A DNA stretch of 63,728 nucleotides, filler included, from Klebsormidium nitens (taxonomy: Eukaryota; Plantae; Klebsormidiophyceae), in the NCBI GenBank assembly GCA_000708835.1. It is 4 parts of 4 records of this genome, joined end to end, with 100 filler letters (N's around TTAATTAATTAA, not from the genome) between each part and the next. Parts side by side here need not be neighbours in the genome. Positions count along the whole stretch, not along the records: positions 1 to 21,409 come from DF237931.1; 3 more parts are not named here. One strand, written 5' to 3'. The notes under the pieces were generated by a model. It searched no databases. It had not been told where the DNA came from and saw only the letters and a program-made list of their open reading frames with translations. Each line of letters opens with the position of its first letter. Position 1 is the stretch's first letter. A program made the translations under genes and the position numbers. This document shows positions 1 to 20,447 of this stretch, one piece after another.

Positions 1-11
1 TAGCCGACGGC

Positions 12-542
12 ATGGTCGACGTCAACAGCAAGCTGTGCGACGTTGAGGGTTGTCCCACGCGTCCAACTTTCGGCGTGCCGGGAGGTCGACCAACTCGGTG
101 CACAAGACACAAAACCGTGAGCATGGTGAATCTCATCAACAAATGCTGCGATTCGCAAGGATGCAAGAAACAACCGTCCTACGGCGTTACGGGTGGGCGT
201 CCAACCTCGTGCGCGGAGCACAAGGCAGCGGCAATGGTCCCACACAGGCTTTGTGCGATAGAAGGTTGTGGCAAAGCACCCACATTTGGGCTGCCCCATG
301 TCAAAGCCACGCGATGCGCGCAACACAAGTCCCAGGATATGGAGAGAAATTACACAAAGTGCAAGACAGAGGGGTGCCGGACGTCACCTGCGTTTGGATT
401 CGCTGGGGGGGCACCTACGAGGTGTGGGCGACATCGAGAAGAGGGCATGGAAGATGTTATTACCGTTTTCGTCGAAAGTGTCACGCGAAACCGGCCGGTT
501 GGACCTTTTTCATACGATTGTCGTATATATTTACCCGCTTAA
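12..542 (+). CDS. EsV-1-7-type cysteine-rich repeat protein, open at the window 5' edge; 3' end probably replaced by the Fanzor insertion
   Basis: About 4 repeats of C-x4-C-x3-P-x-F/Y-G-x2-GG-x-P-x2-C-x2-H-K/R-x3-M (e.g. CDVEGCPTRPTFGVPGGRPTRCTRHKTVSMVN). No introns. The repeat pattern breaks after MEDV at ~459. Confidence 0.8.
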   Translation: MVDVNSKLCDVEGCPTRPTFGVPGGRPTRCTRHKTVSMVNLINKCCDSQGCKKQPSYGVTGGRPTSCAEHKAAAMVPHRLCAIEGCGKAPTFGLPHVKATRCAQHKSQDMERNYTKCKTEGCRTSPAFGFAGGAPTRCGRHREEGMEDVITVFVESVTRNRPVGPFSYDCRIYLPA

Positions 543-655
543 GTACTGTATACGACAGTCCGGTATTATAAGCCCTCGGCTCGTATACCATAACCTGGGC
601 CGTGCGTAAAATTTCCAAGAACTAATTTCCTAAGGAGACTCATAGGGGTGGTCTA

Positions 656-3600
656 ATGCCACCCAAGAAACCCCCAGATGTCGCTCTCCACCACGAATGC
701 CTGGCCTACGTGAGCAAACTCTTCAAAGAGCCTAGGACCCGAGAGGACGTCAAGCTCAGGGCCCTGAGGAACAAAGAGACCGAATGCACCGTGGTCAAGA
801 CCAGCCTCAGCAGCTTCTGCAAGGACGCTGCCAGGGCCCTCCCTCTGGAGAGCGTGCTCAAGGAAGTGAATAAGGCCATATTTGAGGCCTACGTCCTTGC
901 TAACCTGCATGTACTACGGATGTGTGAGTCAGGTCGAGAAGTGCCACTTCTGGACCAGCCCTTCTTCTACAACTGCCTCTCTGCCGTCAGTATGGCTGGT
1001 AGGCAGAAGAGCTCCGTCAAAGACCTCTACCTCAGGGAGACCGTAGAGCTCTACCTGGCATCACGCCCCGCAAGCTATCTGCCTCCGGACTGTGAGCATC
1101 TCTCTTCCGGCTGGTACCAGAATGCAAGCCTTCAGATGGCCACGTGCACCAGGAATTCCGTCGCCACCAACTTCTACAAGCGCTTCAAGCGCTACCTGAA
1201 GCACAAGTACTCCCTCGACGGCCCTTCATGCTATTCCAAGATGCGGGACATGTTCGCCGATGAGTACGAAGGCGACGACCCACTGGTTTTGAGGTACCGA
1301 GCCATGCTTCCAAAAGCCACTACTGGCAGGGCAGACTCCACCCCTCACATACTCATGCCAATGCAATACATGTTCCNNNNNNNNNNNNNNNNNNNNNNNN
1401 NNNNNNNNNNNNNNNNNNNNNNNNNNNNNNNNNNNNNNNNNNNNNNNNNNNNNNNNNNNNNNNNNNNNNNNNNNNNNNNNNNNNNNNNNNNNNNNNNNNN
1501 NNNNNNNNNNNNNNNNNNNNNNNNNNNNNNNNNNNNNNNNNNNNNNNNNNNNNNNNNNNNNNNNNNNNNNNNNNNNNNNNNNNNNNNNNNNNNNNNNNNN
1601 NNNNNNNNNNNNNNNNNNNNNNNNNNNNNNNNNNNNNNNNNNNNNNNNNNNNNNNNNNNNNNNNNNNNNNNNNNNNNNNNNNNNNNNNNNNNNNNNNNNN
1701 NNNNNNNNNNNNNNNNNNNNNNNNNNNNNNNNNNNNNNNNNNNNNNNNNNNNNNNNNNNNNNNNNNNNNNNNNNNNNNNNNNNNNNNNNNNNNNNNNNNN
1801 NNNNNNNNNNNNNNNNNNNNNNNNNNNNNNNNNNNNNNNNNNNNNNNNNNNNNNNNNNNNNNNNNNNNNNNNNNNNNNNNNNNNNNNNNNNNNNNNNNNN
1901 NNNNNNNNNNNNNNNNNNNNNNNNNNNNNNNNNNNNNNNNNNNNNNNNNNNNNNNNNNNNNNNNNNNNNNNNNNNNNNNNNNNNNNNNNNNNNNNNNNNN
2001 NNNNNNNNNNNNNNNNNNNNNNNNNNNGGAGTCGCATCACCCCCTGACAGAAGAAGAACTGAAGAAAGGCAAGCAGCTGAGGCTCTTCAGCCTCCTACCC
2101 ACGAAGAGGGGCTTCGAGTGCAATCACCTCAAGATGTGCACGAATGGTCTTTATGGGCTTCTCAAGAAGGGAGGGGTCGAGCTTCCGGCCTCGGGAGCCG
2201 AGTTCAGGAAGGTGGCTGACGATTACTGGCGGGACCTCTTCGACATCGCAAAGTTTGAGACGTGCAACCGCAAGTTCGCAGGCGAGATCCTCACGGACGG
2301 AAAGGCCGTCTGCATCGTACTGAGGAAGCCAAAACCCAAGCAAGCTTCAGGCGAAGCAACACTCCCCGACCTCACAGGCGAAGAGGAGTTGTGGGGCCTA
2401 GACCCCGGCAGGCGAGACCTCTTCGTCATGGTCAACGAAGAAGGAGAGAAGCTGAAGTGCTCAACTCGAGAATTCTATGGCGACGCCAAGTACAAGCACA
2501 GCAACGCCAAGATCAAGCGGTGGTACGATAAGAGCCTGGAGGTGCTCGAGGCCATCCGCAACATGCCTACCAAGAAGACCTCGGAGAGCACCAAGTTCCT
2601 CGCTTACGTGCACTTCGTGCTGCCTCGGTTGGACATGCTCCTCGTCTACCACATGAGGCAGGGATTCAGAGGGCTCAAGTTCAAGCGGTACATTTCGGTG
2701 CAGAAGAAGCTGCATGCGCTCTGCAATGCCATAACGAGGCGAGTGGGTTGCAAGACGGTGGTGGGCTTCGGGGACTGGTCTAACAAGGACTCCGGAGGCA
2801 TCATCAAGGGGTCTCCTTCTGGGCCCGTGAAGCGACTGGAACGGGAGCTCCGCAAGCATTGCAGGGTGGTCACGATGGACGAATTCAGGACGAGCAAGCT
2901 GCACTTTGATTGCAAGACGCAGCTGCGCAATCAGTATTCGGAGAAGCGGTGCAAGGATGGGGCGGTCAAGACGTTCAAGGTCCATAGTGTACTCCACTGC
3001 ATAAACAGTGGCTGTCATGGTATGACTGTGAACCGCGACGTGAACGCCGCCCGTAACATCCTGAGGCTGTTGAGGCTGCGGCTCGAAGGCCGCACCAGGC
3101 CGGTGGAGTTTTGCCGGTCGGTTAAACCGAGCAACCACCCTCCTCCAGTGGAGACACCCGCAAACCCGGGGTGGCAACTCGGATCTCGATTTGGTGCTTG
3201 GATGAAACTAGTATTTAAGATTATCTATATGATCATGGTTTTTTCTTGCAATGTAAATGGCACCGTTGAATTCCTTGCGTCGAGAGGAGCAGATATCACC
3301 TCTTATATGTGAAAATAAATGTATGGGGTGGATGCTAGAGCAAATATTGGACCCAATAATCATTGAATACTTATGAAGGTGGTGTGCGACCAAGATAAGG
3401 GGGTAAAAAGCCCAATAAACATATTTAAATAAATGAAAAACACTACGAATATGGTGAAAAGCAAGCCTAAATCCGTTCAATATCCAATAATCGGATGGGT
3501 ACGAGCCAAATCTCTTGGACGCAGACCTCGTACACAAGCACCCCTAGTTGCCACCCCAAGCCCGCAAATCCCCCTCCCCCCGCGGATACACCCGCAAATC

Positions 3601-3968
3601 CGCCTCCCCCAGTGGAAACACCCGCAAATCCGCATCCCCCTGTGGAAACACCCGCAAATTCCCCTTCACCTGTGGAAACACCCACAAATCCGCCTCCCCC
3701 TGTGGAAACACCAACGAATCCCCCTCCCCCTTTGGAAACACCACCCCCCACACTTGAGCCCACGGAGCCCTGCAATGACACTGCGCCGGCGCCTCAGCCG
3801 GTGACGGTGCCCGTTCCAGCTCCACAGCCTGCTGCGACCCCCCCTCCGGATGTCCTGCCCATCGACGTCCCTTCCCCAACACCCACTTTGCTTGCCCCTG
3901 CTCCTTCAATGACGTCGCCAGCTCCCGCTCCCTGGGTCGAGGACCCGTTGCAAGTATGCTACAAGTAA
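656..3968 (+). CDS. Fanzor1 RNA-guided endonuclease, split by gap 1377-2028 and interrupted by MITE 3165-3560
   Basis: N-terminal VVKTSL...VNKAIFEAYVLANLHVLR...LDQPFFYNCLSAV. After the gap, LRLFSLLPTKRGF and ILTDGKAV. RuvC-I LWGLDPGRRD, RuvC-II VVTMDEFRTSKLH, Zn-knuckle HFDC...HCINSGC, RuvC-III NRDVNAARNI. All three acidic catalytic residues are present. Confidence 0.9.
3165..3560. mobile_element. 396-bp non-autonomous DNA transposon (hAT-like MITE)
   Basis: Perfect 8-bp TSD CCCGCAAA (3157-3164 and 3561-3568). 15-bp TIR with 2 mismatches, containing a perfect 12-bp core GGGGTGGCAACT/AGTTGCCACCCC. AT-rich interior within a GC-rich context. Confidence 0.8.
3561..3750 (+). repeat. 30-bp minisatellite (~6 copies, one more at 3137-3164) encoding TPANPPPPVE
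   Basis: Unit ACACCCGCAAATCCGCCTCCCCCTGTGGAA in tandem, without spacers. Confidence 0.9.
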
Positions 3969-4068
3969 CTATCAGCTCCGGAATTGCACCTGCGTCTGCA
4001 ATTGATTCCCCTGGGCCTGAGAGAGCCCGCGGCAAGCGGAGATCGTTAAAAGCTTAGGGAGTTGAATA
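3969..4068 (+). ncRNA. Candidate Fanzor omegaRNA scaffold (3969-4048) plus flanking guide (4049-4068, AAAGCTTAGGGAGTTGAATA)
   Basis: Closing stem CTCCG 3976-3980/CGGAG 4037-4041 encloses a 7-bp stem AATTGCA/TGCAATT and a GGGC/GCCC hairpin. It lies between the ORF stop and the predicted right end. Expression is not shown. Confidence 0.5.
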
Positions 4069-4089
4069 ACCCACAAACAACATCGAATC

Positions 4090-5256
4090 ATGACTATCAA
4101 GAAGAGTTTCTCTGGATCTAAACAGCTCCAATTCAGGTGCGATCACCCAAAATGCCAGAAGGCGTTTGCCCGTCGCAGAGATCTGGCTGATCACAAAAGA
4201 GTCCATTCGGGTGAACGTCCCTACCTTTGCCGCCAAGCCGGCTGCGATAAATCCTTTGCGCGAAGCAGAGGACTGAGAGCCCATAAAAGGGTGCATTCGG
4301 GGGAGCGTCCATTCGTTTGTCCGGAGGCCGGATGCGGAAAGGCCTTTGCGGACAGCAGCACACTTACTAAGCACCAAAGGACGCATTCAAGCAAGCTTCC
4401 CTTCGTTTGTTCGGAGCCTGGATGTGGGAAGGCCGTTGCGGAGAGCAGCACACTTTCCAAACACAAGAGAACGCATTCTGACGAGCGTCCCTTTGTGTGC
4501 CATGAAGCCGGATGCAGGAAGGCCTTCACACAGAACGGTCACTTGACCAATCACAAAAGGGTGCACTCGGGCAAGCGTCCCTACGTTTGCGACGAACCGG
4601 ACTGTGGGAGAGCCTTTGCGGAGAGCGGCCAAATGACAGCGCACAAGAGGGTGCATTCGGGGGAGCGTCCCTATGTGTGCCAGGAAGCGGGTTGTACCGA
4701 AGCCTTCACTTGGAGTGGCAGTCTGAAGGAGCACATATTCTACTATCACACCGCCGACCGGCAGCAGCGCCGGAAGCAAGAGGAGGAGCGAGTCGCAAAG
4801 GCCCTCACGAAGGCCCAGATCGATTTCAAACGGGAGCACCAAGTGGATTTCGGGTGCCTTCAGGGGACGTTCGCACGGACGGACTTCATTGTCCTCATGG
4901 GGGGCAAGGTCATCATAGTGAAAGTGGACGAATATCAGCATGAGAGCTATGGGATTTCCTGTGAGGTTGCACGAATGCTCCAAATCCAAAAAGCACTGAT
5001 GCTTGAGGAAAACGAATTGCCCGTCCACATCCTGAGGTACAATCCCCACACATTCCATATTGACGGAATCAAGAAGCGAGTGACGAGGCAAATCAGGGAG
5101 GAGCGCCTGGTCGAAGCGATACGTGAGGCAAGCAGAGGCAAAGGAGGTGGTTTGCAAGTGCGCTACATGTACTACAACATTCAGGATGGTAGACCTAAGA
5201 TTATGAATGGTCCCGCCTTTATTATAGGGGATTGTTGTTTAGAAGCAATTGCGTAA
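4090..5256 (+). CDS. 7x C2H2 zinc-finger array fused to a Vsr/DUF559-like PD-(D/E)xK endonuclease domain; intronless
   Basis: Seven C-x4-C-x12-H-x3/4-H fingers with SGERP-type linkers. C-terminus FKREHQV...RTDF...VKVDEYQHESY...CEVARM...LRYNPHTF resembles endonucleases found in large DNA viruses. Confidence 0.8.
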   Translation: MTIKKSFSGSKQLQFRCDHPKCQKAFARRRDLADHKRVHSGERPYLCRQAGCDKSFARSRGLRAHKRVHSGERPFVCPEAGCGKAFADSSTLTKHQRTHSSKLPFVCSEPGCGKAVAESSTLSKHKRTHSDERPFVCHEAGCRKAFTQNGHLTNHKRVHSGKRPYVCDEPDCGRAFAESGQMTAHKRVHSGERPYVCQEAGCTEAFTWSGSLKEHIFYYHTADRQQRRKQEEERVAKALTKAQIDFKREHQVDFGCLQGTFARTDFIVLMGGKVIIVKVDEYQHESYGISCEVARMLQIQKALMLEENELPVHILRYNPHTFHIDGIKKRVTRQIREERLVEAIREASRGKGGGLQVRYMYYNIQDGRPKIMNGPAFIIGDCCLEAIA

Positions 5257-6018
5257 AGTGCGCCACAATGACCGATATTGTTTCATCTCAGTCGCCGTGG
5301 CGTTTCTCCAGACAAGCATGCATGCTCTCAAACGGCAAGATTGGGTTTTGAGACACTGACGGGGCTGGACATGCAGCGTGATGTGGAAGCAAGCTTCTTC
5401 ATGGAGATAAATGGACTGATACCTACGGAGCAAGGTACGCCCTCTGTCACAAACGTGAGCCTTACAGGTGACACTGATCTGCTGGCAAATGGCAGCGGGC
5501 ATCGCTTGCTCTCGATGCAGTGCCATGGGAAAGTGCAGGTGTTGCAAGCCGGGTATACCCGCGCTTGGTATACAGCTCAAGACCACGGGTAAGGACTGGG
5601 TGCAGCAGAGGAGGGGCAACAAGTACAGCCTGACTCGGCTTAACCGAACCCTTTATGCCATGTGTTCGGTCCAGGAGCATTCAATCGTCGATATACGGCC
5701 GGTTCACCGTCGTTTTTGGCTCTTTATAATAACGAACAACCATTCACAGTGCGCCAGACCGTCATCGCGACGCAGGCTCATTTAATATTTCGCACGAACT
5801 GACATTGACCTCCTCTGGTTATCTAAACGACAGCAGATTGTACCCTTAACCGCAACAAATACAGACTTTGGCCGTCTGTTATGCCGCAGTCTCGTTACAC
5901 GGACGGCAGGCACAACTGTAATGTTTTGGCCTTTTTCGGCACTTCCAGGCAAGTTCCGGGCAAGAAACCAATTTCTTTTAGGTTCTGCCGTCTGCCGCCA
6001 ATGTAACGAGGGCCTAAA

Positions 6019-6098
6019 TCCGACTCCGGCTCCGACTCCAACTCCGGCTCCGACTCCGACTCCGAATCCGTTTCGAACTCCGACTCGGACTCCGAGTC
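6019..6098. repeat. Degenerate (TCCGAC/TCCGGC)n hexamer repeat
   Basis: tccgactccggctccgactccaactccggctccgactccgactccgaatccg... Confidence 0.85.
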
Positions 6099-7540
6099 CT
6101 CACCGGGCACCAGAGTGGCAGGCAGAAGCCGCCTCACAGTGCCTGGGGCTCTGTTCGAGACTCTTACTCCAACTTGGACTCTGGTTTGGACCACGTGGCG
6201 TTCCCAAATGAGTTGAGAAACATACAGAAGGTCATAGAAGCTGCATGACAGTCTGTCAATGTCAGCAGGTGACTCGAAGTTGCTGGAACGTCCACGTGGC
6301 CTCTCCTAATGGGTTTCGAAGTACACGGAAGGTCCTAGAAGGGTGCATACATGCATACAGGCAGGCACCCAAGAGTACAGACAGACCTGCAGACCCACAG
6401 ACTAGGACTCTCTGGGGCAGTCACCCAACGTTCATAGGTCGCATATGTTGGGGATTTGGTTTTGTCCTTGCAAATGCGCTCCACAGCCTGTCATTAAAGC
6501 CCCGCAATACTTTCCGTACCATTTCTCCACTTCCGGTTGCAAGTGTTCTTGTTCCAGGCTAGGCTGAAAACACTGCTGGGCTGCCAGACTTATCAGGTAG
6601 CGACCGTGGCCCCACCTCCAGTTCACCCTTTTTATGCTTTGCTTCCTGATCTTTCGTTTGTAATCTGGCATGCTTTGTTTTCTCCTCATCATGACGTGAT
6701 TTGACCTTTGACAAATCTGCTATTCTTGTACTGCACTTGCCTCTTCCACCTCATTGCAAATTTTGGCCCGGGCCGTCCATGTGCCGCAAACTGCCGGCGG
6801 CAGTTACGGCGCATGCAGTCAGGGTGTGCCGCTCCGGCAGTCATCGAGGTGCCGCAGCCTGCCGTCCGGATATGTTCGTGCCGTCAGGGAGCCGTCCCTG
6901 TGCCGTGTCACTGCAGGCGCGGCACACCGACCCGGCGGATGTCCGGCACTCTGGGACCCGGTGCACGCAGTCGTACGGCACATGCAGTCTGGCTGTCAGG
7001 CAGCTGCGACGGCACGTGTACGGTTCGTTTGTCATGTGGACGGCATTGGCACGGCATGTCATACGGCCAACGAGTCATGACATTTCTCATTTGTGCGGCA
7101 TTAACACGGCATGCACAGAGATTGGCCGGCATAGGCGACGTTCTGATGAGTGGCGCAAAGTTTACGCAGAAAGGCTTGAATGATGGTGTGTCGTAAACTT
7201 CGCGCGACCGACAATATTGCATATTTTAAAACGACCAGCTGTAAGGGATCCACCATTAAGACACCTGGAACGCTATGATGCTCTCAGAGTGCACGAGAAG
7301 CCTTTCTCAATACCCAAAATCTGCAAAAACTGCCTGCGGCGCTGCTCCGGAAAACTGAGTGAAGAAAAGCAAAGTTTCCGCACCGACTTCGCTTTGCTCA
7401 GGGGGGCTCCAACTTTGCTTTTCTTCACTCAGTTTTCCTTCGATAGATGGGATGAATCTTGTCACTTCATGATGTCCTGAGTGTCTTAATAGCGGAAATG
7501 CTACATCGGCGGTTCATTGTGTTGCTTAGAAGTCCACTGA

Positions 7541-9204
7541 GTGCTAAGTCCGTAAATCCAATTCAGAACCACTGTCGAATGTTTACTGTACTAGTTGGCT
7601 ACTAAGCTAGTCAGAGTGACTCAGTTGTGAGACTAGCTGTACCTCAATTGGCGTCAAAATGATTGCAGTGCTATGCGGTCCTTCTCCAACTCGTCCTTCA
7701 AGCCTGCGGATGATTTAGCAACGTGGATCAGCTTTGAACAAAGTAGAAACCTCCTAGACATATGATGGCGCGCAAAATACGTTACAGTTGCTTCATATTA
7801 GCATTCCTGCAGAGATAATGCACCATGGATAAGACTTGGCGCATAAATTACGTTGAAACCTCTCATATGCCTTACTAGCGTAATTTGTGCGCCAGCAGCA
7901 AAGGCGCGTTAAAAAAGGCTGGCACTCACGCCAGTTGGTCAAAGCATCAGTTGAGATCGCCCTTAAGTTACACTACCATCAACTTTTGACAAGCTGGTAA
8001 GGCTCGTGAAATCTCACCCTCGATCAAGTTGCCTTCCTTGACCATCACAGAGACCTGCAATGGACAATGCAATATTTAATTAGCAAACATATGAGCAATC
8101 AATGTAATCAATGGCAACTATCCAACTCATCAACAAGCTGCAAATCTAGTTTGTGAAAGACAATTCTATCAGCAGAGATTGCAATACTACAGACAAAATG
8201 TCTAAATCCTGCACAACTCTGCATACCACATTCTTCAGAAACTTTACTTGAATCACTTGCAATAGTTGATCTATCTAAAGCTTGATTTTCAATTGTTGCA
8301 GCTGAGCACAAGGTTGGCGGCATGAAGATCAAACATTGCTTGAAGTTCAGATGCGATCAAACATTGCGCNNNNNNNNNNNNNNNNNNNNAGTGCTAAGTC
8401 CGTAAATCCAATTCAGAACCACTGTCGAATGTTCACTGTACTAGTTGGCTACTAAGCTAGTCAGAGTGACTCAGTTGTGAGACTAGCTGTACCTCAATTG
8501 GCGTCAGAATGATTGCAGTGCCATGCGGTCCTTCTCCAACTCGTCCTTCAAGCCTGCAGATGATTTAGCAACATGGATCAGCTTTGAACAAAGTAGAAAC
8601 CTTCTAGACATATGATGGCGCGCAAAATACGTTACAGTTGCTTCATATTAGCATTCCTGCAGAGATAATGCACCATGGATAAGACTTGGCGCATAAATTA
8701 CGTTGAAACCTCCCATATGCCTTACTAGCGTAATTTGTGCCGCCAGCAGCAAAGGCGCGTTAAAAAAGGCTGGCACTCACGCCAGTTGGTCAAAGCATCA
8801 GTTAAGATCGCCCTTACACTACCATCAACTTTTGACAAGCTAGTAAGGCTCGTGGAATCTCACCCTCGATCAAGTTGCCTTCCTTGACCATCACAGAGAC
8901 CTGCAATGGACAATGCAATATTTAATTAGCAAACATATGAGCAATCAATGTAATCAATGGCAACTATCCAACTCATCAACAAGCTGCAAATCTAGTTTGT
9001 GAAAGACAATTCTATCAGCAGAGATTGCAATAGTACAGACAAGATGTCTAACTCTTGCACAACTCTGCATACCACATTCTTCAGAAACTTTACTTGAATC
9101 ACTTGGAATAGTTGATCTATCTAAAGCTTGATTTTCAATTGTTGCAGCTGAGCACAAGGTTGGCGGCATGAAGATCAAACATTGCTTGAAGTTCAGATGC
9201 GATC
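7541..9204. repeat. ~815-bp tandem duplication (7541-8359 and 8391-9204)
   Basis: Near-identical copies with scattered substitutions and small indels, separated by a 20-N gap. The minus strand carries small exon-like pieces with stops. Confidence 0.85.
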
Positions 9205-9856
9205 ATTTTGAGGTTGTCTTTATTGCGCCTCTCGGAATATCGTTGTCTCTCGCCGCACGTCCGCAGTCCCCCGGCCATTGTTCCCATCCTCTATCATAGT
9301 GGCGCACTTGGGCAACGCCATTGCGGGGCCATTGCGCTGAAGACTGCAAGTAAATTGAATTGAATTGCGCCATGGCGCCCTACAAGGCGGCACCTGATGG
9401 CTTACCTAGCTAGCGACCTTAGTATTACCTCTAATGTGTCGAGTCTAAGCCTAGGCTGAGTCTAGGCTAGAGTGGTTGACCGAGTCGAGTCGAATTTGAA
9501 TTTGAACTACCTAGGTACGACATTTGAAATTCGACCGTCGATTCGATCATCGACGGTGGATCAAAATCTCCAGCAGATCGTCCGTACATACCCTAGGCTA
9601 GATATGGACCACACTCGTAGGTATGGACCGTACGGTATATTAGGAAACATTCAACTTGTAAGCGCACAAGGACCGACCGCTGTACGGTCCCAGAAAAGGG
9701 ACCGGTAGGCAACACAATACGCAGGCACGGCCCAAAATTGGCCGCTCAGATTACGCTCGGGCATGACACAGGCCCAGCCGGTACGTATGTTAAATTAAAT
9801 TTTAAAATGTCAATCAAATGCTATATACTTTTACTGAGGCTCCAAGATCGTAACCG

Positions 9857-9950
9857 TGACAGCGGCCTAGTGGTAGCGCGTCCGGTTGTAAGGGCAATGT
9901 GGGACCGAGAAGTACCGAGTTCGAATCTCTCATGAGACGTACGACTTTTC
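9857..9950 (+). ncRNA. tRNA-like Pol III A/B-box sequence (tRNA pseudogene or SINE head)
   Basis: A box GGCCTAGTGGTAGCG (9864-9878), B box GAGTTCGAATCTC (9917-9929), TTTT shortly after. Acceptor and anticodon stems are imperfect. Confidence 0.4.
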
Positions 9951-11879
9951 TCGTGCGTGACGCCTGGCGCACAAGTTACGATGCGCAGCGCTGTTGGTCT
10001 ATCAATCGTAAATTGCGCGCTAGTATATGTTCTGACACATTTTTGGATCCACAACTTTTCCCGAGATCTCTTTTTAAACCCCAAGTGCCCTCGCGAGCAT
10101 GGGAGGCTAGCTCACTTAGTCTAGGATGCCACTCGGACCTTCCAGACTTTTATGTGTGAGCCTGAGGTATGTGAACAAGTCCTAGCGCGCAGTTTACGCT
10201 AGACAGGTGAGAAAAACTGCACATCGTAATGTGTCACTTGACAACTAAAAGCCGTCCCCCTTGGATGTTTTGCAGCGAGCCACGAGCACGCGAAGCAGGT
10301 GCTTCAACTCCTCCAAGCCCAGCCTCTCCTGTCGGAGTTGCCTGTAACACTGGGGACGGTCCTCGGGCGGGAGAAGGGGTTGAACCCCGCCTCGTTTGAC
10401 CCGGTCGAGTATCTCTGAGCAAAGTTCGCTCCTCGGGTGAGCGAATATAACATTGTCATGATGCGACGATGAATTCGAGTGGTTTTGGAGCATATCAAGG
10501 AACAGATGAATCATNNNNNNNNNNNNNNNNNNNNNNNNNNNNNNNNNNNNNNNNNNNNNNNNNNNNNNNNNNNNNNNNNNNNNNNNNNNNNNNNNNNNNN
10601 NNNNNNNNNNNNNNNNNNNNNNNNNNNNNNNNNNNNNNNNNNNNNNNNNNNNNNNNNNNNNNNNNNNNNNNNNNNNNNNNNNNNNNNNNNNNNNNNNNNN
10701 NNNNNNNNNNNNNNNNNNNNNNNNNNNNNNNNNNNNNNNNNNNNNNNNNNNNNNNNNNNNNNNNNNNNNNNNNNNNNNNNNNNNNNNNNNNNNNNNNNNN
10801 NNNNNNNNNNNNNNNNNNNNNNNNNNNNNNNNNNNNNNNNNNNNNNNNNNNNNNNNNNNNNNNNNNNNNNNNNNNNNNNNNNNNNNNNNNNNNNNNNNNN
10901 NNNNNNNNNNNNNNNNNNNNNNNNNNNNNNNNNNNNNNNNNNNNNNNNNNNNNNNNNNNNNNNNNNNNNNNNNNNNNNNNNNNNNNNNNNNNNNNNNNNN
11001 AGAGAGAAAGAGAGAGGGAGAGACACTCGACGTAGACGGAGGAAGAGAGAGACTACACTAAGTTGGACCTTGATCATTAAAGTTGTCTGCTGCAGCTTCA
11101 GTTTGTCCCTAGCGACTGGAGTCATGTTTTTCTTGTATAACCGCGTGAGCGCATCATCGCAGTGAGCCTTCGCATGACAGTTTGACGCAGCGAGTAATCA
11201 CGTTTCGCATTCCTTTTCTTCTCGAAAGGACTAGCGCACACTTTACGCCTAATAGGGCGATCGGACTGTGCATCGTGACGTGTGCGCCTGGCTTGCAGAA
11301 TGGCACATGGCAGTACTAGCGCGCAGTTTACGCCTGACAGGGCGATAGGGATGCGCATCGTGTTGTGTGCGCCCGGCGTGCAAACCGGCACTCGTTGGTA
11401 CGGTGGCGGCACGGTGTGCAGCACGAGCCCGGCACTGATGTTACGGTGACGGCACTGTACGCGGCGTGGGCCCCAGCCGTCACGGCAGCCGGCCATGTTG
11501 GCACGGCCATCAGCTGCCGCGCAGCAGCATTGACGGCTCAACCTTACGGCACAAACGTGATGGCGCCCGGCAGCCATAGGCACCGCTGGCATCATGCGGC
11601 AGGCGGTGCGGCAAACACAACGCCGAACGGCAGGGGATCGGCAGGGGGTCGGCAGTTAACGGCATGAGTGCGGCACTGGAGATGCCTGGTCGGCATGGGT
11701 GCGGCACCTGGTCGGTTCATAGGAAATTTTGCGATGCTCTTCGACATTGCCTGGTTCCGCACAACATCATTACACCTTCGTGATCGATCATAGAAGATTT
11801 TGTTTGCACATCCTTTTTATTACTGTGTTCGGATCCTCAGACTCGTAACCCTCCCATCATTGGATATTGTTTCCAACAG

Positions 11880-13004
11880 GTCCTTACCTGTAATTGCAGC
11901 TTTACTCCCATCTCAACCTGTACCAGAATGGTCCACCTTGTGGATCCTGTAATTGCAGCTTTACTCCCATCTCAACCTGTACCAGAATGGTCCACCTTGT
12001 GGATCCCCTCATTCTTTTTGAGGAAAAGGTGAGCTCCATTCTGATACGCGAGGATCTGATGTTGGAATTGTGCATTTTGATATGGGAAGAGTCAATGTTG
12101 AATCTGTGTGAGAACCGTTGAAATATGGTTGTTGTTTGAATATGACTCTGTTAGAGTTGGGCCTCCACATTCATGATCGAGGTCTCCAAGGTTGAAGGCC
12201 TCCAGGTTTGATGCAGGTTGTGGCACATGCCTTGATCTTGAAATCAATCTGAGTAGATGATTCAATTTTATTACTTGCAGATAGTTAGTTGCAGAACGGG
12301 TAGTAGCAACACAAACGCATTGCAGTATGCTGATATCTTCCAATTGGGTTTAGGAACATTGTCTGTGCAGGACGTGACAGACGCTGACCTCAAACCCATT
12401 CTTGCGGCTTTGGCGGAGGTGGATGATACTGCTGTACGGAGTATAGATGAGCAAGTACAGAAACGCAAATTGGTAAGAATTTTCATTCACCATTTTCTTA
12501 AGCAAGTCTCTTATACTATTGCTGACATGCCAGTTGTGGTTGTTCCGAGAGTGGTTGTTGTGAGAGGTTCATTGAAAATCGGTTGCCCTTGATTCAGAGT
12601 CCCTCAAAGCAGGTGTGAACTGCTTTGCCTACTTCTTGAACTTCACATGACATAAACTTGATTAGTTGGATAACCATTTTTGTTTTTTCCCCTTTTTACA
12701 GGCGGAAAAAAGTGCAGAGTTCGAGCTCACACACCCTACTGGCCCCTTCACCCATGCTCACGTCGTCAACACCCAACCCTATGCCATAATTGTGGTGGCA
12801 ATAAGGGAGAAGGAAATGCGGCGCCTGCAACAAATCAACATGACGGGGGGTGGAGGTCCGACATCACTTACAGTCGGACTTGGCTTGCAGTGGGCTTTCC
12901 AGTCGGGTAGAGTCGTCCAGTTTTGGACGTTCCCGTACCAGCCACTTCAACTGCCTGACAACTCGGCATATGTAGTGGCTTCACCCATTTCATCAAACGG
13001 GTGA
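11880..13004 (+). pseudogene. Spliced gene of unknown function; one exon carries a 59-bp tandem duplication (11887-12004)
   Basis: Open AG/GT-bounded exons at ~12283-12472 (IVSCRTG...QKRKL) and 12702-13004 (AEKSAEF...SSNG*). The 59-bp duplication is not a multiple of 3. Confidence 0.4.
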
Positions 13005-14025
13005 AATGTTGGTAGCTCAAGTGGTGAGGCATGGGCGTACATTAATCGTGGATAACGCAGACATGCCCATGCCAGATCTCCGCAACATGGTCATGAATTT
13101 TGCCAACTAGGTAGCTGAAAAGGCAAAGTGTATCTTGTAAAAATAGATATGGTGTTTGAAAGACTGAAACAGCTGAAAATTAGTAGAAGTAAGAGGCTTC
13201 TGTACATTAACTGTGAATATGACATAGGTAGTTAAGTACTGTACATTAAGTGTGAATATGAGATAGGTAGTTAAAAAACGTTAGTGTATTTTGGAATTGT
13301 CGGAAAGTGTTTTGAAAAGTCTGACGATGGAGAGAATATCAAACCGAAAATAATTTTGTACATAGAATTGTATATATGATGAAATAACCTGGGAATGCGA
13401 TACAATAAGTAAACAAACGACATGACGCCAATTGCAAACGATCAAATCAATGCCTAATGGGAGTTTTGGCAAGCATGTGAATTACAAAACAAATGCCCAC
13501 GTGAACTACGTGGCTTTCTCCCAAAATCCTCATGCAAGAGCACGTGCCCTACACATGCCAGACTTACTCTTTGGTGTAGGCAAGTTCTGAAAGGGTGTTG
13601 TTTTGCGGTCAGAAAGACTCGTTCATTTTGGAGAAGAGAATCAGACAACATGGCGGATGATAGAGGGCTTATCGTCGACATGGAAACACCATCAGGAGAG
13701 AGAGGCAGCGCTTGAAGAACGAAATGCAGCGCTTGAAGAACGAAATGCAGCGCTTCGCCGAGTTACAGTGCTTGAAAGGGAGAGGTATGTCGCCATGTTG
13801 ACAAACAGATGTATCATAGAACACCTGTCAGTGGAAACAACCTACTTTCGTTGGATGCCGCTTTAAAGTTTCTAGTCAAGAGAGTCTGACGTCAGCTGCA
13901 TGAATTGGGGACCATGGGGAGCACGTGTTTTTAAAAGTGGTTCCAGGTGCAGTATGAATTGTGGAGCAGCACAGTCTATTCGGGTTTGCACACAAGAGCT
14001 TAGTCCATTGACCTCTCTCCTGCAG

Positions 14026-14433
14026 TTCAGGGAGCTTTCGAGCTTACAGCTTATAATAAAGGCAGAGGAGGTTGCAGATTACGAGCAACAACAGGAATTT
14101 AGGTGGCTCGCAAAGGCAAGATGGGATGTCATTTTGGACTTGCACATAAAGACAGAGAATGATGACGTCCTGGACTGGTTGTTTGGTCTTGGAAGAGTGG
14201 TCATCAACCTTTTTAGCCATCATTGGGAAGATACAGAGGGACAAAGAATATCTGAGGGCAGTCTTGAGTACAGGCCTTCTGATGTAGAGAATGGGCTCGA
14301 GTGTGCTGAAGTGCACCTAGACTCGAAGCAGAAGTGGACAGAGTCGTTTGCTAGGGCTGTTGAGGAAACTGAGTGGCTCGACAGTTTGAAAATAGTATGG
14401 GTTGACAAGCCAGATGAACAAACGGGCGAATAG
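14026..14433 (+). CDS. Probable terminal exon of an uncharacterised gene
   Basis: Stop-free, protein-like frame after a CTGCAG acceptor. An upstream frame (13603-13866) has a 21-bp AALEERN repeat. No family recognised. Confidence 0.3.
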   Translation, partial: FRELSSLQLIIKAEEVADYEQQQEFRWLAKARWDVILDLHIKTENDDVLDWLFGLGRVVINLFSHHWEDTEGQRISEGSLEYRPSDVENGLECAEVHLDSKQKWTESFARAVEETEWLDSLKIVWVDKPDEQTGE

Positions 14434-16609
14434 ACTCCCAAAAGGACACATTGTTATCTAGCTTACACAAGTCCTTTGCAGGTTCATGGTTTGCTTTTAT
14501 TTCACACACAAACACGGATAACAAGCCTTTTTCAAAAGCTTTGGTAAGAATGAGAATGTCATGTAAGGCCTCCTAGAGAGAGGCTTTGAAATACTCATGC
14601 GCTCCGTGTTGCGTGGTGTACAATAAATTCAATATTCACAGGAAAGTACATGAGATTGTTGCAGTTCATTACTAACATATAATGGATGGTATGGCTGATT
14701 ACCTTCAAAAGCTTTGGTTCTGATTGTCGAGTTAGTTTGCCTAGAGAAGAGCTTCAAAGGGGACTCAGTGTGAGCCGTCTACTACAAGCTACATACCTTA
14801 CTACTGCTATTCAGAACTCTAGGGCTTACAGGATGGGCTCAACGTTCCATTCCGGGATGATCCAGTGCTTCCCCTCTGCTGCAGCTCTTCCTTCTAGCAA
14901 AGGCTCCAAGGTTTGGAGGAAGAGGTGCTGGTCTAGTGCATTACAGGGGCTCAAGATTTTCCGTTTGGAGGCTGGAGAACGCTGCCCGTTTGCAGATCAT
15001 AGAGAGTGACGCAATGTGGCGACTTGTATGGTTCCCCTTTGGCAGCCCCTTTCGACCAGAACTCTACACCAGTGGAGGAAGAGCAGCGGCCAAACTGAGC
15101 AGCAGTAGAATCCATGAATGCTATCTGACTAGCTCCAGCTGCAGTCCTGAGCTCAAGACGCGCCCGCTGGTGACCGTACGCCCTCCTCCCCTGCTTGTCA
15201 CGACCAATGGCCTCTGCCACCAATGTCAACGTGGCCCCAATCCCTCTTTCTCCAGCTCATAGGCGAGAGCGTTGCGGATAGGACCCATGTACACCCCGCT
15301 TATGACCTGAAGACTCTCTACGGAGCACAGTCCCAGCGAAGCTGACTTGACGTAGAAAGGTTTCTTGACCTATCCTTGATCTCTGGGTGAATGCGCAGAG
15401 GGCTAGAGGGAGGCATCAAGTGGACGCAGAGGGGGTTGACTGAAGACATCACCTCTGCCAGCTGAGCTTGCCTGCTGTTTGTGGCGCCCTTGCCAAAATA
15501 CTTTGCTTTCCCCTCTGTCAGCGGCTTCACGTCCATCTCGTACCGCAGGTTCGACTTGCGCACCCAAGGACAGGGTGATCTGCCGCACTCTCTGCTGGAC
15601 GGCATGAGCTAGACTGATAATGTCGTTTCTTTCCCTTGGCACATAGTCTGAGGTCCACACGTCCTGCAGCACGTCCCTGGCAGCAGCGAGCTTGCGCTTC
15701 TGGGAAACCCTTAGCGCCATTGCTCCCTCCTGCCTCTAACAGCCGCACCTGAGTGCCTTTCTCTCCTAACAGCTCTATCTCTCCTAAGCTCTAGCCTCTG
15801 AGCCTCACTTTGAATGAGAAATTGACCAGTGTTTAGAGAGTTGGGATTTGGATTTGGACGGGAGTGATGTTCACCTGTCCAAACAAGTCGGGCGCATGTC
15901 CAGGCAGCCTGTTACTATGACGGGAATGAGCCGAGGCGTGCCCGATCTATACGGGCACGTGCAGATTTGTGACGTACAGGGTGTCGTGACCAAAAACGTT
16001 GCCGTAATCCGCTTGAAAGGCCATGGTAATGCTACCGTTACCGATGGGAAGCAATTTTGGGTCTAACAGCCTTGCACGTGTTTTGCCAGCACATGCCGAG
16101 CGAATGGGCCGAAGCTTACTTTTAAAGCTATGGTAATGGTAGGGTGGACTGTCCTTTTGTCCGCAAACGTTGGGTGTGTGTCCAGGCAAGCCTGGCACTT
16201 CGACGGGAGTAGGCTGAGGTGTGCCCGACATTCGCGGACATTGCACTTGGGGTGACATGAACGAAACGAGGCCCTTATTTTCCCGCAATGTGTCAGAGGC
16301 AAGGCCATGGTCTGAAAAGTTGGGCCGCAATAAGCTATCCACGTGTTTATGAGCTGTAAGCTTACCGGGAAAGGAGTGCCCTCTCTAAGTCCGAGAGGTG
16401 CTATATCAAGTTAAGAGACTTGTCTCCATTCCGAAATCGAATCTCTAAGTCTACCTCCGGGGCCCTTGTAGTTGACCGGGGACAGCCAAGAGCTTAGAGG
16501 TTAGAATCTTTAACCGGGCACTAAACCTCAAAGGCCCCATACCCCCCGACCGGAGTAGGGTCTCCCCGTTTGGCTGTGCCCCCTGGAGTTCAGCTTACCC
16601 ATGCCAGTA

Positions 16610-17400
16610 GAATGAGAGGCTTTGGTGGACATGTGCAGACTGTATGAAGACCCAAGATATTTCCTTGGAATGAACAAGACATGGACGCAGTTTCATAAGC
16701 ATCGCCTGGACAAAGCCCTAAAAGGGCGCGAATAGATCATGGATGGCCTGCACTCCTTGATCAACGATCCACATGCTGCAAACTGAACATCTGGACACAA
16801 CATGCATGTTTGGACGTCACATTCTCTGTGAAATATGTCAGGTGCGGATGGGTGACTGTAAGGAGGTACCGGGTGATACACGTGGTAGCTCACGGTTGAT
16901 AGGACTTGTCGGGGGTTCAAACAGCAAATTTCAACATCGACCGGCTGCCTGATGATGAGGAACTGCGGCGCATGGCTGCCCACTCACCACACGGAATATT
17001 GTGGTCAATTGTACATCGAATATGCCCGCCGGCCGAGCCTCTCGAAGTAGTGCGGCTCGCTTTTGATGATAAAAGGCTCTTTGACTTGTATGTCTACAAG
17101 CCGCTAGAAAGAAAGCCCGCAAACATACGCAAAGGCACTGCGAATGTACTGCGTGATTACACTGAATTTCTGGATGCCAACTGGTGTCCTGTTGAGCGGC
17201 AAAACAAAGAGGTCTCTGACTATGGGTATATGCTTAGCGATATACGGAAGGACGGTACCGTCCTAAAGGTGATTCACCGACAAGCAATTAAGGAATGGAT
17301 ATCAAAGCCCCCAGTTACGGCGCGCAATCTACTCACAAACCGTCTGCTTGATTTTGCAAACATGCGAACCTTGCGTGCTCATAAACAAATGTCACTGTGA
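16610..17400 (+). pseudogene. Decayed ORF of unknown function
   Basis: 16906-17400 is open (164 aa). The upstream coding-like frame is broken by several TGA/TAG stops. Confidence 0.3.
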
Positions 17401-17483: not shown

Positions 17484-20447
17484 TCACCTAGGGGTGACGA
17501 ACCTTGAGGCCACTTGCACCGTGCTCTCACGCACTGACCGCTCCGCAGTTGAGGAGCCCAGGCTGCCCAAGTACCCAGACGACCCCTCCGAATCCCATAT
17601 CTCTTCCTGTCTAAAGCTCGCGTCCACGACTGAGGCTCGAGCAAGGAGCGAGCCAACATCTTCCATGGTGGGCCTTGCGGACGGGTCCGTCCGCAGGCAT
17701 GCCAGTGCGACGTGGATATAGTTCCGCGCTTCCTCCGCCTCGGAATTTCTCCCAAGAACCGGGTCCACAAGCTCCAATTCTCTCCCCTCGGTAACCAGAT
17801 TCATGGCGACTTTCAGGAGCCGCTCTATGACTCCGCTCTCAAGCTGACGCACTGCGGGGCGCTCGCTGATGAGCTCCAGCAACAACATTCCAAAGCTGTA
17901 GACGTCGCACTTCGGGGACAGGAAGCGGGCACCCCCGTGCAGGTACTCGGGGGCCATGTATGGAACCGTGCCCTTGACCATGGTCGACGTCTTCCCCCCC
18001 GTGTCTTGCACCAGATGCGCGAGGCCAAAGTCGGCAATGCAGGCATTGATAGGGTCGGCTTCAGTCAGAAGGATGTTGGCGGCCTTGATGTCCCGGTGCA
18101 CCATGGGTGGGCGAATATGGTTGTGCAGATAGATAAACCCCTGGCAAACCCCCCTGGCTATGTTCATCCGATCCCCCCAGATCAGCACAACCTCCCCTGC
18201 ACCAGGATGGTGAAGCTGCCTGTCCAGGCTCCCACGGGGGAAAAAGTCGAAGATCAGCAACCGCTCCCCTCTTTCCACGCGAACCCCGAGGAGGGGCACC
18301 AGGTTCACGTGCCAGACCTTATCCAGAGCCTCGACTTCCGCTTTCCACGACTGCTCCTCGACGTCTCTGCGCCCTGGCCTCGTCTCTAGCCGCTTGATTG
18401 CGACAAAGGACCCGTCTTGGAGGACGCCCTTGTAGACCGTGCCGAACGAACCCCTCCCGATNNNNNNNNNNNNNNNNNNNNNNNNNNNNNNNNNNNNNNN
18501 NNNNNNNNNNNNNNNNNNNNNNNNNNNNNNNNNNNNNNNNNNNNNNNNNNNNNNNNNNNNNNNNNNNNNNNNNNNNNNNNNNNNNNNNNNNNNNNNNNNN
18601 NNNNNNNNNNNNNNNNNNNNNNNNNNNNNNNNNNNNNNNNNNNNNNNNNNNNNNNNNNNNNNNNNNNNNNNNNNNNNNNNNNNNNNNNNNNNNNNNNNNN
18701 NNNNNNNNNNNNNNNNNNNNNNNNNNNNNNNNNNNNNNNNNNNNNNNNNNNNNNNNNNNNNNNNNNNNNNNNNNNNNNNNNNNNNNNNNNNNNNNNNNNN
18801 NNNNNNNNNNNNNNNNNNNNNNNNNNNNNNNNNNNNNNNNNNNNNNNNNNNNNNNNNNNNNNNNNNNNNNNNNNNNNNNNNNNNNNNNNNNNNNNNNNNN
18901 NNNNNNNNNNNNNNNNNNNNNNNNNNNNNNNNNNNNNNNNNNNNNNNNNNNNNNNNNNNNNNNNNNNNNNNNNNNNNNNNNNNNNNNNNNNNNNNNNNNN
19001 NNNNNNNNNNNNNNNNNNNNNNNNNNNNNNNNNNNNNNNNNNNNNNNNNNNNNNNNNNNNNNNNNNNNNNNNNNNNNNNNNNNNNNNNNNNNNNNNNNNN
19101 NNNNNNNNNNNNNNNNNNNNNNNNNNNNNNNNNNNNNNNNNNNNNNNNNNNNNNNNNNNNNNNNNNNNNNNNNNNNNNNNNNNNNNNNNNNNNNNNNNNN
19201 NNNNNNNNNNNNNNNNNNNNNNNNNNNNNNNNNACACTGGTTGCGTCAAAGTGCCTGGTGGCTTTTTGCAGCTCCTTGAGGGTGAAGCGCTCCTGAAGAG
19301 ACGTAGGGGCTGGAGGTGCAGGGACGATTGCCCCGTGAAGCTCGTTCTTTGGGTCACCTTCCTCGAGACTTGGGACAGCAGCGGGAAACCCCTTCCGCCC
19401 CTTCCGACAATAGAGGCAGAAGCCTATCGTTGCAGCGGCCACAAGAAGAGCGGCGCCAGCAAGCACTCCGCCGACGATGGGTCCTACTGAAGTGGATGAG
19501 GAAGGGGGCGCTTGATTAGGTCCCAGAGTTGGTGTCGGCTGAGGGGTTAAGGAGGGGGGTAGAGAAGGCAGGACTGGGGCCACGAAAGGAGGTGCATTTG
19601 GTGGAGGGAAGGCGAACACTGGCGGAAGTGGTTGCAATGAGGGGGTTAGAGAAGGCAGAGCTGGGGGTGGAGGGAAGGCAAACACTGGCAGAAGCGGTTG
19701 CAATAAGGGAGGTGGCGATGAAGGGGCTGGGGGTGGAAAGTCAGCACACAGGCCTGTAATGGAGCATGTGAGGCAGCACAGTCCAGAATTTCCTGGGAAG
19801 AAGGAAATTCCACGAAACCGGGAAAGAGTTGGAGGTATGGGTCCCGACAGGCTGTTGTTGTTGAGCCAAAGGATTTTAAGGTTGGTGACGCTGCCGAGCT
19901 GCGGGGGGATGGGGCCCGAGAGGCTGTTGTGGGAGAGGTCCAAAGACGTGAGGTTGGTCAGGCTGTCGAGCCCCGAAGGAACGGAGCCCGAGAGGTTGTT
20001 GCTGGAGAGGTCGAGGTATTGGAGGCCGGCGAGGTTGCCGAGCTACGGGGCGATGGGGCCCGAGAGACTGTTGGAAAATAGGGAGGGAAACTGGACGCTA
20101 GTGAGGTTGCCGAGCTGCGGGGGGATGGGGCCCGAGAGGCTGTTTTTGTAGATGTAAAGGTTTTGGAGGCTGGTGAGGTTGCCGAGCTCCGGTGGGATGG
20201 GGCCAAAGAGGCTGTTGTAGGAGAGGTCCAGGTAGGTGAGATTGGTCAGGCGGCCGAGCTGCGGGGGTATGGGCTCCGAAAGGCCCTTAGAATTCAGGTT
20301 GAGCTTGGTCTGGTTCCAGAGGGGACCATCGACCAGGCTGCCAATATCCTCTATGGTGGCTGGGTGCACTTTGCACGTGGAGCTAAACCACCACAAAGCC
20401 ACCAGAAGCAGCATTCTTGCATCTAGACGAGTTGCAGGCCTGGCCAT
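17484..20447 (-). pseudogene. Intronless LRR receptor-like kinase (RLK/Pelle, RD kinase) with one in-frame TAG at 20043-20045
   Basis: Signal peptide, ~8 plant LRRs (LSGPIPPQLGNLT), Pro-rich stalk, TM (IVGGVLAGAALLVAAATIGFCLYC), and kinase IGRGSFGTVY, VAIK, HRDIKAAN, DFG, YMAPE. The frame continues through the stop. Gap 18462-19233 falls between HFDATS(V) and IGRG. Confidence 0.9.

Follow-up and report, generated by a model that had tools for sequence, protein, structure and literature searches.

The window analyzed here, a 63,728-nt stretch of Klebsormidium nitens DNA, opens with the 3' part of an ORF for an EsV-1-7 cysteine-rich repeat protein (Pfam PF19114, E = 1.5e-37, four repeats). This is the gene that was hit by the insertion of a Fanzor element, the remains of which follow (Table 1). 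Beyond the element lies proline-rich coding sequence, then a short intergenic spacer and a neighboring gene for a C2H2 zinc-finger protein. An LRR receptor kinase gene is also present on the same scaffold. The proline-rich sequence is interrupted by a MITE-like insertion bordered by an 8-nt duplication, CCCGCAAA, at 3157–3164 and 3561–3568. When 3165–3568 was deleted in silico, both the reading frame and the 30-nt periodicity came back. The MITE-like insertion sits in the flank, outside the Fanzor element.

Table 1. Features at the Fanzor1 locus, in window coordinates.
Feature	Position	Strand	Basis or remark
EsV-1-7 cysteine-rich repeat host ORF, 3' part	1–459	+	Open from contig start; scaffold edge truncates 5' side
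Surviving Fanzor1 element: left end, 5' leader, ORF	457–3124	+	Without last 2–3 codons, 3' RNA region and right repeat
TTA at left boundary, target/TAM-like motif	457–459	+	First three bases of conserved terminus TTATTACC
Left terminal inverted repeat, ≈33 nt	457–489	+	Window left end matches intact copies
14-bp hairpin within left end	516–560	+	Sequence mostly kept in L003 and L005
Fanzor ORF, N-terminal 240 codons	656–1376	+	92% DNA identity to L001
Assembly gap	1377–2027		Stated 651 nt
Fanzor ORF, C-terminal part with RuvC D/E/D and TNB zinc-finger region	2028–3124	+	Pfam, PDB match, family alignment
Start of flank and of proline-rich coding repeat	3125–3164	+	In phase with Fanzor ORF and EsV-1-7 ORF
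MITE-like insertion, 396 nt, 15–18-nt inverted ends	3165–3560		Inverted-repeat detection
Proline-rich ORF, 30-nt tandem repeats (PPPVETPANP), then unique tail	3569–3968	+	Stop at 3966–3968
Intergenic spacer ahead of C2H2 gene	3969–4089	+	ATG at 4090
Neighbor gene, C2H2 zinc-finger protein with NERD-like C-terminus	4090–5256	+	Outside element

The left end and the Fanzor1 gene

All seven left ends examined, that of the window copy among them, open with TTATTACC, and all eight right ends examined in the paralogues close with GGTAATAA. Reverse-complementing the right end of an intact copy gives a sequence that agrees with its left end over ≈33 nt. The left junction proposed in the initial annotation, TTA|TTACC (457–460), is common to every left end seen. 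Its reading of TTA as the TAM also holds, as the motif is conserved at 7/7 left ends and is the TAM published for the K. nitens nuclease KnFNuc (PMC10530073). Hairpins had been suggested just inside this end; one long hairpin was found there, but the fold of the full left 196 nt is unexceptional (z = −1.1). Two further resemblances were attributed to chance. A 17-mer resembling TTATTAC at 11817 has four mismatches and no partner. The left flanks of the window copy and of copy L004 are alike (GCATGGA), as if both had inserted into an EsV-1-7 target, but the L004 flank contains no such ORF.

The Fanzor ORF is split by an assembly gap, with no stop codon on either side. In all eight paralogous loci compared, the sequences corresponding to the gap edges are only 10 nt apart and in frame. 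These 10 nt code for LRYM in P0002, and the partial codons at the gap edges in the window (c.. and ..g) are compatible with that reading. The two halves of the Fanzor ORF are therefore continuous and in frame, provided that the gap conceals nothing more; the stated length of the gap is either too large or hides an insertion.

As initially annotated, the ORF (656–1376 plus 2028–3124) encodes a Fanzor1 protein with an intact catalytic site. In a 14-sequence family alignment, the RuvC D (2401–2403) and E (2881–2883) fall in invariant columns and the second D (3037–3039) in a near-invariant one. Residues 19–365 of the C-terminal piece matched the SpuFz1 structure (PDB 8GKH) with E = 1.5e-10. The score for PF07282 (TNB zinc finger, Cas12f1-like TNB domain) was 24.6 bits in the window ORF against a cut-off of 26.3, and a Pfam search with the N-terminal 240 residues gave no match. 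Precomputed annotation assigns PF07282 to many homologues. Judged by its sequence, the ORF is a genuine Fanzor1 in which the predicted catalytic residues are retained. The protein is 98% identical to K. nitens KFL_009820010, which is the GenBank entry for this gene, and 96% identical to KFL_016210020; the K. nitens matches form a single family with at least 79% identity. The 3' end of the ORF (2950–3124) is strongly folded (z = −3.4).

Intact relatives and the missing right end

Intact relatives of the element are ≈2.19 kb long. They begin with the left repeat of ≈33 nt, followed by a leader of 200 nt, a Fanzor ORF of 611 codons and ≈150 nt of conserved, highly structured 3' non-coding sequence, the end of which is the right repeat. 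L001–L008 all have this structured 3' region. This module folds at −82.8 kcal/mol (z = −5.84), and its conservation is 0.75–0.96, compared to 0.78–0.94 for the ORF and 0.35–0.41 for the 5' leader between subfamilies. Covariation in the 3' region among eight close copies was 0.103, versus 0.096 when shuffled, and was equalled by 63 of 500 shuffles. Since covariation did not rise above the shuffles, support for the 3' fold comes from the energy z-score and from conservation. No Rfam family was found in the window or in L003. From its sequence, the 3' module of the intact copies looks functional. By analogy with the published KnFNuc and with TnpB, it would be transcribed as the scaffold of a guide RNA, the guide would be the DNA beyond the right end, and the nuclease would cleave TTA-flanked matches, i.e., element-free sites.

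The 4.3-kb relative L007 encodes an HTH and a DDE_3 domain (E = 3.7e-19, 4001–4699) between repeats at 2449 and 6746. Because DDE_3 is found within the same repeats, the family is of the Tc1/mariner type, and the L007-type transposase presumably mobilises the whole family. In all copies, the termini are T-TA-TTACC...GGTAA-TA-A, and the flanks hold no further direct repeat; the target duplication is ambiguous, as T-TA...TA-A is embedded in the repeat itself. Comparison of the filled and empty sites in L001 and L005 gave a break at TTA, blurred by substitutions. A scan of IMG/VR with the family alignment returned only distant relatives (25–40% identity), which were of no use for defining the ends. 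The other fetched copies, whose element DNA is 78–93% identical to that of the window copy, all have NCLDV-type genes around them, whether they come from K. nitens scaffolds or from metagenomic virus-like contigs.

The window copy is shorter. Blastn matches to L001, L003, L004 and L005 begin at 445–457 and cease at 3121–3124, and the alignment with the more distant L002 ends at 3069. Window positions 457–3124 correspond to positions 1–2029 of the 2189-nt L003 element, and the intact L003, L004, L005, L006, L007 and L008 run ≈160 nt further, up to a right end that repeats the left one in inverted form. When the 3' module of the intact copies was searched by blastn with a word size of 7 across the whole window, the left repeat was the sole match. 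The right repeat was not found in the window, either with up to four mismatches or by blastn, and the Tc1/mariner-type transposase (DDE_3) is absent from the window copy. We conclude, with a probability of about 85%, that 457–3124 belongs to a multi-copy family of Fanzor1-bearing K. nitens DNA transposons with inverted-repeat ends, and that this copy is truncated on its 3' side and non-autonomous. Such a copy can neither transpose nor provide a guide RNA, and supplies protein at most.

The initial annotation had described a complete element at 460–4048, with the proline-rich tail as part of Fanzor, a compactly folded omegaRNA scaffold at 3969–4048 and the 20 nt from 4049 (4049–4068) as the guide; the empty site would then be expected to read GATGTTAAAAGC. 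The bracketing GTTA is indeed present at both proposed junctions (456–459 and 4045–4048), the ORF is open to 3968 once the MITE is removed, and excision of 460–4048 does yield ...MEDVKSLGS*. However, GTTA is not enriched (63 matches versus ≈96 expected), chance alone gives one within 1 kb downstream, and another plus-strand GTTA is found at 3121–3124, the true end of homology. Similarity between the copies covers 457–3124 only, and nothing past 3124 is common to any paralogue. The proline-rich tail does not belong to Fanzor: the paralogous ORFs stop 2–3 codons after ...FCRSV, and the proline-rich ORF has no counterpart in the Fanzor paralogues. The initial annotation had itself named an end near 3135 in other copies, and a lack of conservation at 3969–4048, as grounds for rejecting it, and both were observed. 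The segment 3969–4048 is conserved in no copy and has no similarity to the 3' region of the family, and the genuine module and right repeat differ from it in sequence and are absent here. It folds at −22.3 kcal/mol, compared to a shuffle mean of −23.3 (z = +0.31), and 122 of 200 shuffles fold equally well. The supposed guide is part of the 41-nt leader ahead of the C2H2 start codon. With no 3' guide-RNA end in the window copy, the proposed scaffold and guide are not real, and a complete element is scarcely credible. A construct made from 3969–4048 and the guide from 4049 would assay intergenic DNA unrelated to the Fanzor system.

The junction 3124/3125 falls within a multi-copy repeat of a gapped draft assembly. 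The genomic copy might thus be complete, with the 3124/3125 join and the oversized gap at 1377–2027 both resulting from mis-assembly of a repeat that exists in at least eight copies. The stated gap of 651 nt, versus 10 nt in all paralogues, is in the same element, and several paralogues (L001) are on tiny scaffolds that end within the element. Mis-joins, however, would be expected at the end of the repeat rather than 160 nt inside it, the sequence from 2028 to 10500 is unbroken, and the two ORFs are kept in phase across the junction. We consider an assembly artefact improbable.

Proposed history of the truncated copy

In the history that we favor for the truncated copy, the element would have entered a TTA within the EsV-1-7-repeat gene. 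Later, this copy would have lost its last ≈160 nt, a stretch that starts with the final 2–3 codons, includes the RNA scaffold and ends with the right repeat, so that the Fanzor ORF came to read on into the proline-rich flanking coding sequence, which may afterwards have gained the MITE. Originally, the EsV-1-7 gene may have continued into the proline-rich ORF. If the deletion on the right side was precise, the uninterrupted EsV-1-7 and proline-rich gene would read GATGTTAAACCGAGC. A deletion stopping precisely at the target site should have left the junction GMEDVKPSNHPP; a search with a degenerate form of it, in sequences other than the K. nitens genome, returned nothing. The unique C-terminal half of the neighboring C2H2/NERD protein was used to look for an empty allele in the JGI metagenomes and found no relative.

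The same in-frame junction would be seen in a domesticated or chimeric gene, in which loss of the stop codon and the RNA module fused Fanzor to the proline-rich tail and, before the MITE arrived, gave a guide-less or trans-guided protein. Consistent with such a gene, no stops interrupt the Fanzor ORF and its catalytic residues are retained. However, a junction is in frame by chance in one of three cases, and a deletion stopping precisely at the target site within an in-frame host gene would be expected to give one as well. Furthermore, the MITE now terminates the ORF at 3312, and a second copy of such a fusion is absent among the matches. A gene of this kind is very unlikely.

A more speculative suggestion, which we regard as doubtful, is that the Fanzor1/mariner-type element shuttles between giant-virus DNA and Klebsormidium cellular genes, given that the window copy, unlike the other fetched copies, interrupts an EsV-1-7-repeat gene on a scaffold with an LRR receptor kinase. 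On this view, the exact-looking loss of the right module might have been left behind by an excision that was aborted after only one end had been cut. The junction, ...GGT-TA-AAC, would agree with breakage at the right TA duplication and repair through 2 nt of microhomology, which would restore an in-frame TTAA target.

Comparison with known systems

The K. nitens Fanzor1 is an ordinary, already known system. KnFNuc is a K. nitens Fanzor1 with several intron-less copies (Jiang et al. 2023, Sci Adv, PMC10530073). It has been purified and its RNA sequenced, its activity has been shown both in vitro and in human cells, and it has been used for editing; its RNA (fRNA) derives from 3' non-coding sequence directly adjacent to the right end (PMC10530073). 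Given that the K. nitens matches form one family with ≥79% identity, KnFNuc probably belongs to the family of the window copy. The two share the species, the Fanzor1 type, the lack of introns, the multi-copy state and the TTA at the left boundary, which equals the published TAM. The intact paralogues also have a structured 3' non-coding region adjoining the right end, like that of the fRNA, whereas the window copy is without this region and without the right end. What the analysis adds, as by-products, is a clean definition, drawn from the intact copies, of the family ends and the ≈150-nt 3' RNA module, evidence for a DDE_3 transposase partner of the family, and the location of nearly all copies in giant-virus-like DNA.

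The homology with SpuFz1 from Spizellomyces punctatus (8GKH) extends over WED, RuvC and TNB, with the DPG..., DE(F/Y)(R/K)TS and NRD motifs aligned. SpuFz1 is distant, however, with many alignment gaps and another transposon context.

Tc1/mariner–IS630 (DDE_3) transposons carrying Fanzor1 have been described (Bao and Jurka 2013, as cited in PMC10530073). The present family resembles them in its ≈33-nt terminal inverted repeats, within which L007 has HTH and DDE_3, and in T-TA...TA-A ends compatible with a TA duplication, although this duplication is inseparable from the repeat, and the window copy is without transposase and right repeat.

The initial annotation followed the logic of the IS200/IS605 TnpB–omegaRNA systems, in which the right end supplies the RNA, the 3' flank serves as the guide, and a motif in the 5' flank corresponds to the TAM. 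The Fanzor family differs from these in having inverted-repeat ends and a DDE transposase rather than a Y1 or serine TnpA, and in the position of its RNA module, ≈150 nt beyond the ORF.

Boundaries of the element and of the window copy

The window copy was compared with eight related loci, located on K. nitens scaffolds (L001, L003, L004, L006 and L007) and on JGI metagenome contigs (L002, L005 and L008). DNA similarity to the window starts at 445–457 in L003–L005, the three loci in which the left end is preserved, and seven left ends, including that of the window, begin with TTATTACC, the flank before each being unrelated. These data bear out the left boundary proposed in the initial annotation. 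On the right, similarity stops at 3121–3124 in L001 and L003–L005, and not at 4048 as had been proposed. Past ...TGCCGGTCGG, intact copies continue with two to three further codons, a stop and ≈150 nt of conserved non-coding sequence, which ends in ...GGCGAAAAYGGTAATAA, the inverted left end over ≈33 nt. The intact element is ≈2,189 nt long (leader, 200 nt; ORF, 1,833–1,836 nt; 3′ region, ≈152 nt), and the window copy corresponds to positions 1–2029 of the L003 element. When four versions of the 3′ module were sought in the whole window by blastn (word size 7), the only matches were to the left repeat and to the end of the ORF, as far as 3124, and the right repeat was not found in the window with up to 4 mismatches allowed. 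Comparison with its paralogues thus indicates that the window copy is 3′-truncated. A complete element, as originally described, has next to no likelihood given that the 3′ module and right repeat are absent from the window. That the break at 3124 is instead an assembly chimera is improbable.

The GTTA said to bracket the element on the right is indeed present at 4045. However, GTTA is not enriched in the window (63 observed vs. ≈96 expected), and between 460 and 5818 the plus strand carries it at 3121, where homology really stops, and at 4045; the bracket is therefore due to chance. Deletion of 460–4048 does give ...MEDVKSLGS*, but this has no diagnostic value. The putative scaffold at 3969–4048 folds at −22.3 kcal/mol, compared to −23.3 ± 3.2 in shuffles (z = +0.31; equalled or bettered by 122 of 200 shuffles), and was not matched by the family's 3′ region in the blastn search (word size 7), so this assignment could not be upheld. 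Nor could that of the 20-nt guide from 4049, which makes up the first part of the 41-nt leader preceding the ATG (4090) of the C2H2 zinc-finger gene.

The open reading frame and its flank

The closest protein match of the window ORF was K. nitens KFL_009820010 (98% identity). The C-terminal piece (2029–3312) matched the solved Spizellomyces punctatus Fanzor1 (8GKH) with an E-value of 1.5e-10 and a Cas12f1-like TNB domain at 24.6 bits, slightly below the Pfam cut-off. When 14 members of the family are aligned, the RuvC residues D (2401–2403) and E (2881–2883) fall on invariant columns and D (3037–3039) on a nearly invariant one. All three are kept in the window copy, which was therefore correctly described as an intact-catalytic Fanzor1 ORF.

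The ORF is interrupted by an assembly gap. Its left edge reads ...MQYMF plus a single c, and its right edge a single g, then ESHHPL; the homologous protein P0002 reads MQYMF-LRYM-ESHHPL across this position. The distance between the edges is exactly 10 nt in 8/8 paralogous loci, which implies that the two sides would be continuous and in frame, provided that the gap hides nothing more. Either the annotated gap size of 651 nt is too large, or an insertion is concealed in the gap, round which the GenBank gene model P0001 splices.

Features flanking the Fanzor ORF in the window
Feature	Position	Strand	Remarks
30-nt tandem repeat coding PPPVETPANP	from 3125		then unique proline-rich tail, stop at 3968
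MITE-like insert, 396 nt	3165–3560		inverted ends of 15–18 nt; 8-nt duplication CCCGCAAA
C2H2 zinc-finger gene, intron-less	4090–5256	same as proline-rich ORF	120 nt downstream of proline-rich ORF
Leucine-rich-repeat receptor-like kinase (LRR + proline-rich + TM + kinase)	17484–20447	−	split by another assembly gap

Deletion of 3165–3568 restores the frame and repeat period of the flank, showing that the MITE sits outside Fanzor. This insert lies within the tandem repeat, has a lower GC content than its flanks and a duplication of hAT-like size; no second copy was found in the window or in the related loci compared. The proline-rich “tail” was considered as part of Fanzor and rejected, having no counterpart in any Fanzor homologue; a functional Fanzor–proline-rich fusion is very unlikely.

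Joining 459 to 3125 yields an in-frame host ORF, ...HREEGMEDV-KPSNHPPPVETPAN..., open to 3968, and recreates TTAA at the junction. Both observations fit a deletion from the TA within ...GGTTA to the right-hand TA duplication; such a deletion could reflect an abortive excision at one end, with repair via microhomology. However, an in-frame junction has a 1-in-3 chance anyway, the 30-nt repeat is itself open in all three frames, and searches for an empty allele found none. We consider such a TA-to-TA deletion to have slightly less than even odds, the alternative being a deletion extending some distance into the flank.

Transposase, target site and genomic surroundings

At the K. nitens locus L007, the family's ends (2449 and 6746) enclose a longer version of 4,298 nt, which has two ORFs upstream of Fanzor, one for HTH and one for DDE_3 (E = 3.7e-19, 69.5 bits). 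These ORFs within shared ends assign the family to the Tc1/mariner/IS630 type, with the 2.19-kb copies as its non-autonomous derivatives. Within L007 2449–6746 there is a second, internal left-end copy (3628–3672) and the transposase N-terminus is duplicated, with an unrelated minus-strand ORF (3011–3547) between the duplicated parts; the appearance is that of an autonomous copy, nested or rearranged. The termini, T-TA-TTACC...GGTAA-TA-A, are compatible with TA duplication in a TTAA-like target, and no other direct repeats were found in the element flanks. In a natural filled/empty pair, the right flank of L001 (2129–2728) is 95% identical to element-free L005 4891–5483; homology ends at TTA, and the TTA of the L001 terminus is TTGA in L005.

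The other copies (L002–L008) all sit among genes of giant-virus (NCLDV) type: major capsid protein, ribonucleotide reductase with intein, topoisomerase II, ThyX, RNase III, Bro-N, HNH, TFIIS and mRNA-cap methyltransferase. This setting is common to K. nitens scaffolds and metagenomic contigs (JGI 3300060284, 3300060285), and NCLDV inserts in K. flaccidum/nitens are on record (PMC5294986). Three GenBank gene models (P0086, K. nitens KFL_006700050; P0123; P0127) join Fanzor fragments to adjoining genes. Two are named thymidylate synthase (FAD), and one includes a C-terminus that by eye is apparently Ulp1-protease-like. These fusions are likely annotation artefacts of passing intron-less viral-type DNA through a eukaryotic gene caller.

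In the window, the zinc-finger protein has six or seven C2H2 fingers and, at its C-terminus, a NERD-like (nuclease-related) region; its C-terminal half, used as query, found no relatives in JGI metagenomes. The region 5300–17400 has few ORFs and a further gap (≈10515–11010), whereas 1–5256 is densely filled with same-strand ORFs; a block that is virus-derived or rich in transposons may have its edge here. From the presence of the receptor-like kinase, the scaffold appears to consist of ordinary cellular DNA, at least in its right part.

The RNA module and comparison with KnFNuc

The last ≈190 nt of intact copies (e.g., L003 7800–7988) fold at −82.8 kcal/mol (z = −5.84), with several predicted hairpins and a long terminal stem pairing the right repeat with a subterminal inverted copy. 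Pairwise conservation is 0.75–0.96 in the 3′ non-coding region vs. 0.78–0.94 in the ORF; that of the 5′ leader falls to 0.35–0.41 between subfamilies. Covariation in the 3′ region (three compensatory pairs; score matched by 63/500 shuffles) is uninformative with only eight close sequences, and no Rfam family matched. The end of the window ORF (2950–3124) also folds well (z = −3.4), which would fit an RNA starting within the coding region.

Taken together, we favor, with a probability of about 0.85, a family in which a DDE_3 transposase from autonomous relatives would mobilize the element via its ≈33-nt inverted repeats. Fanzor would carry the 3′ RNA, with a guide taken from the DNA that follows the right end, and once loaded would cut TTA-flanked sites without the element, as has been published for both KnFNuc and TnpB. 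Having lost its stop codon together with the right repeat and the RNA module, the window copy would be immobile and guide-less. In the initial annotation, the calls of Fanzor1, of TTA and of the left end were thus right; those of completeness, scaffold and guide were wrong.

KnFNuc, the Fanzor1 of K. nitens tested by Jiang et al. 2023, has no introns and 5 copies, and co-purifies with RNA from the non-coding 3′ region that adjoins the right end of the transposon (PMC10530073). Its TAM is TTA, in agreement with the TAM ending in TTA proposed for the window copy, and it makes focused nicks, with editing in human cells of up to 2%; Fanzor RNAs reach well past the ORF and overlap with the inverted repeat (PMC10530073). 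Since all K. nitens matches form one family of at least 79% identity, we infer that KnFNuc is a member of the window copy's family. The Fanzor1 system of K. nitens is already known and experimentally tested, and the published features of KnFNuc all agree with the intact paralogues compared here.
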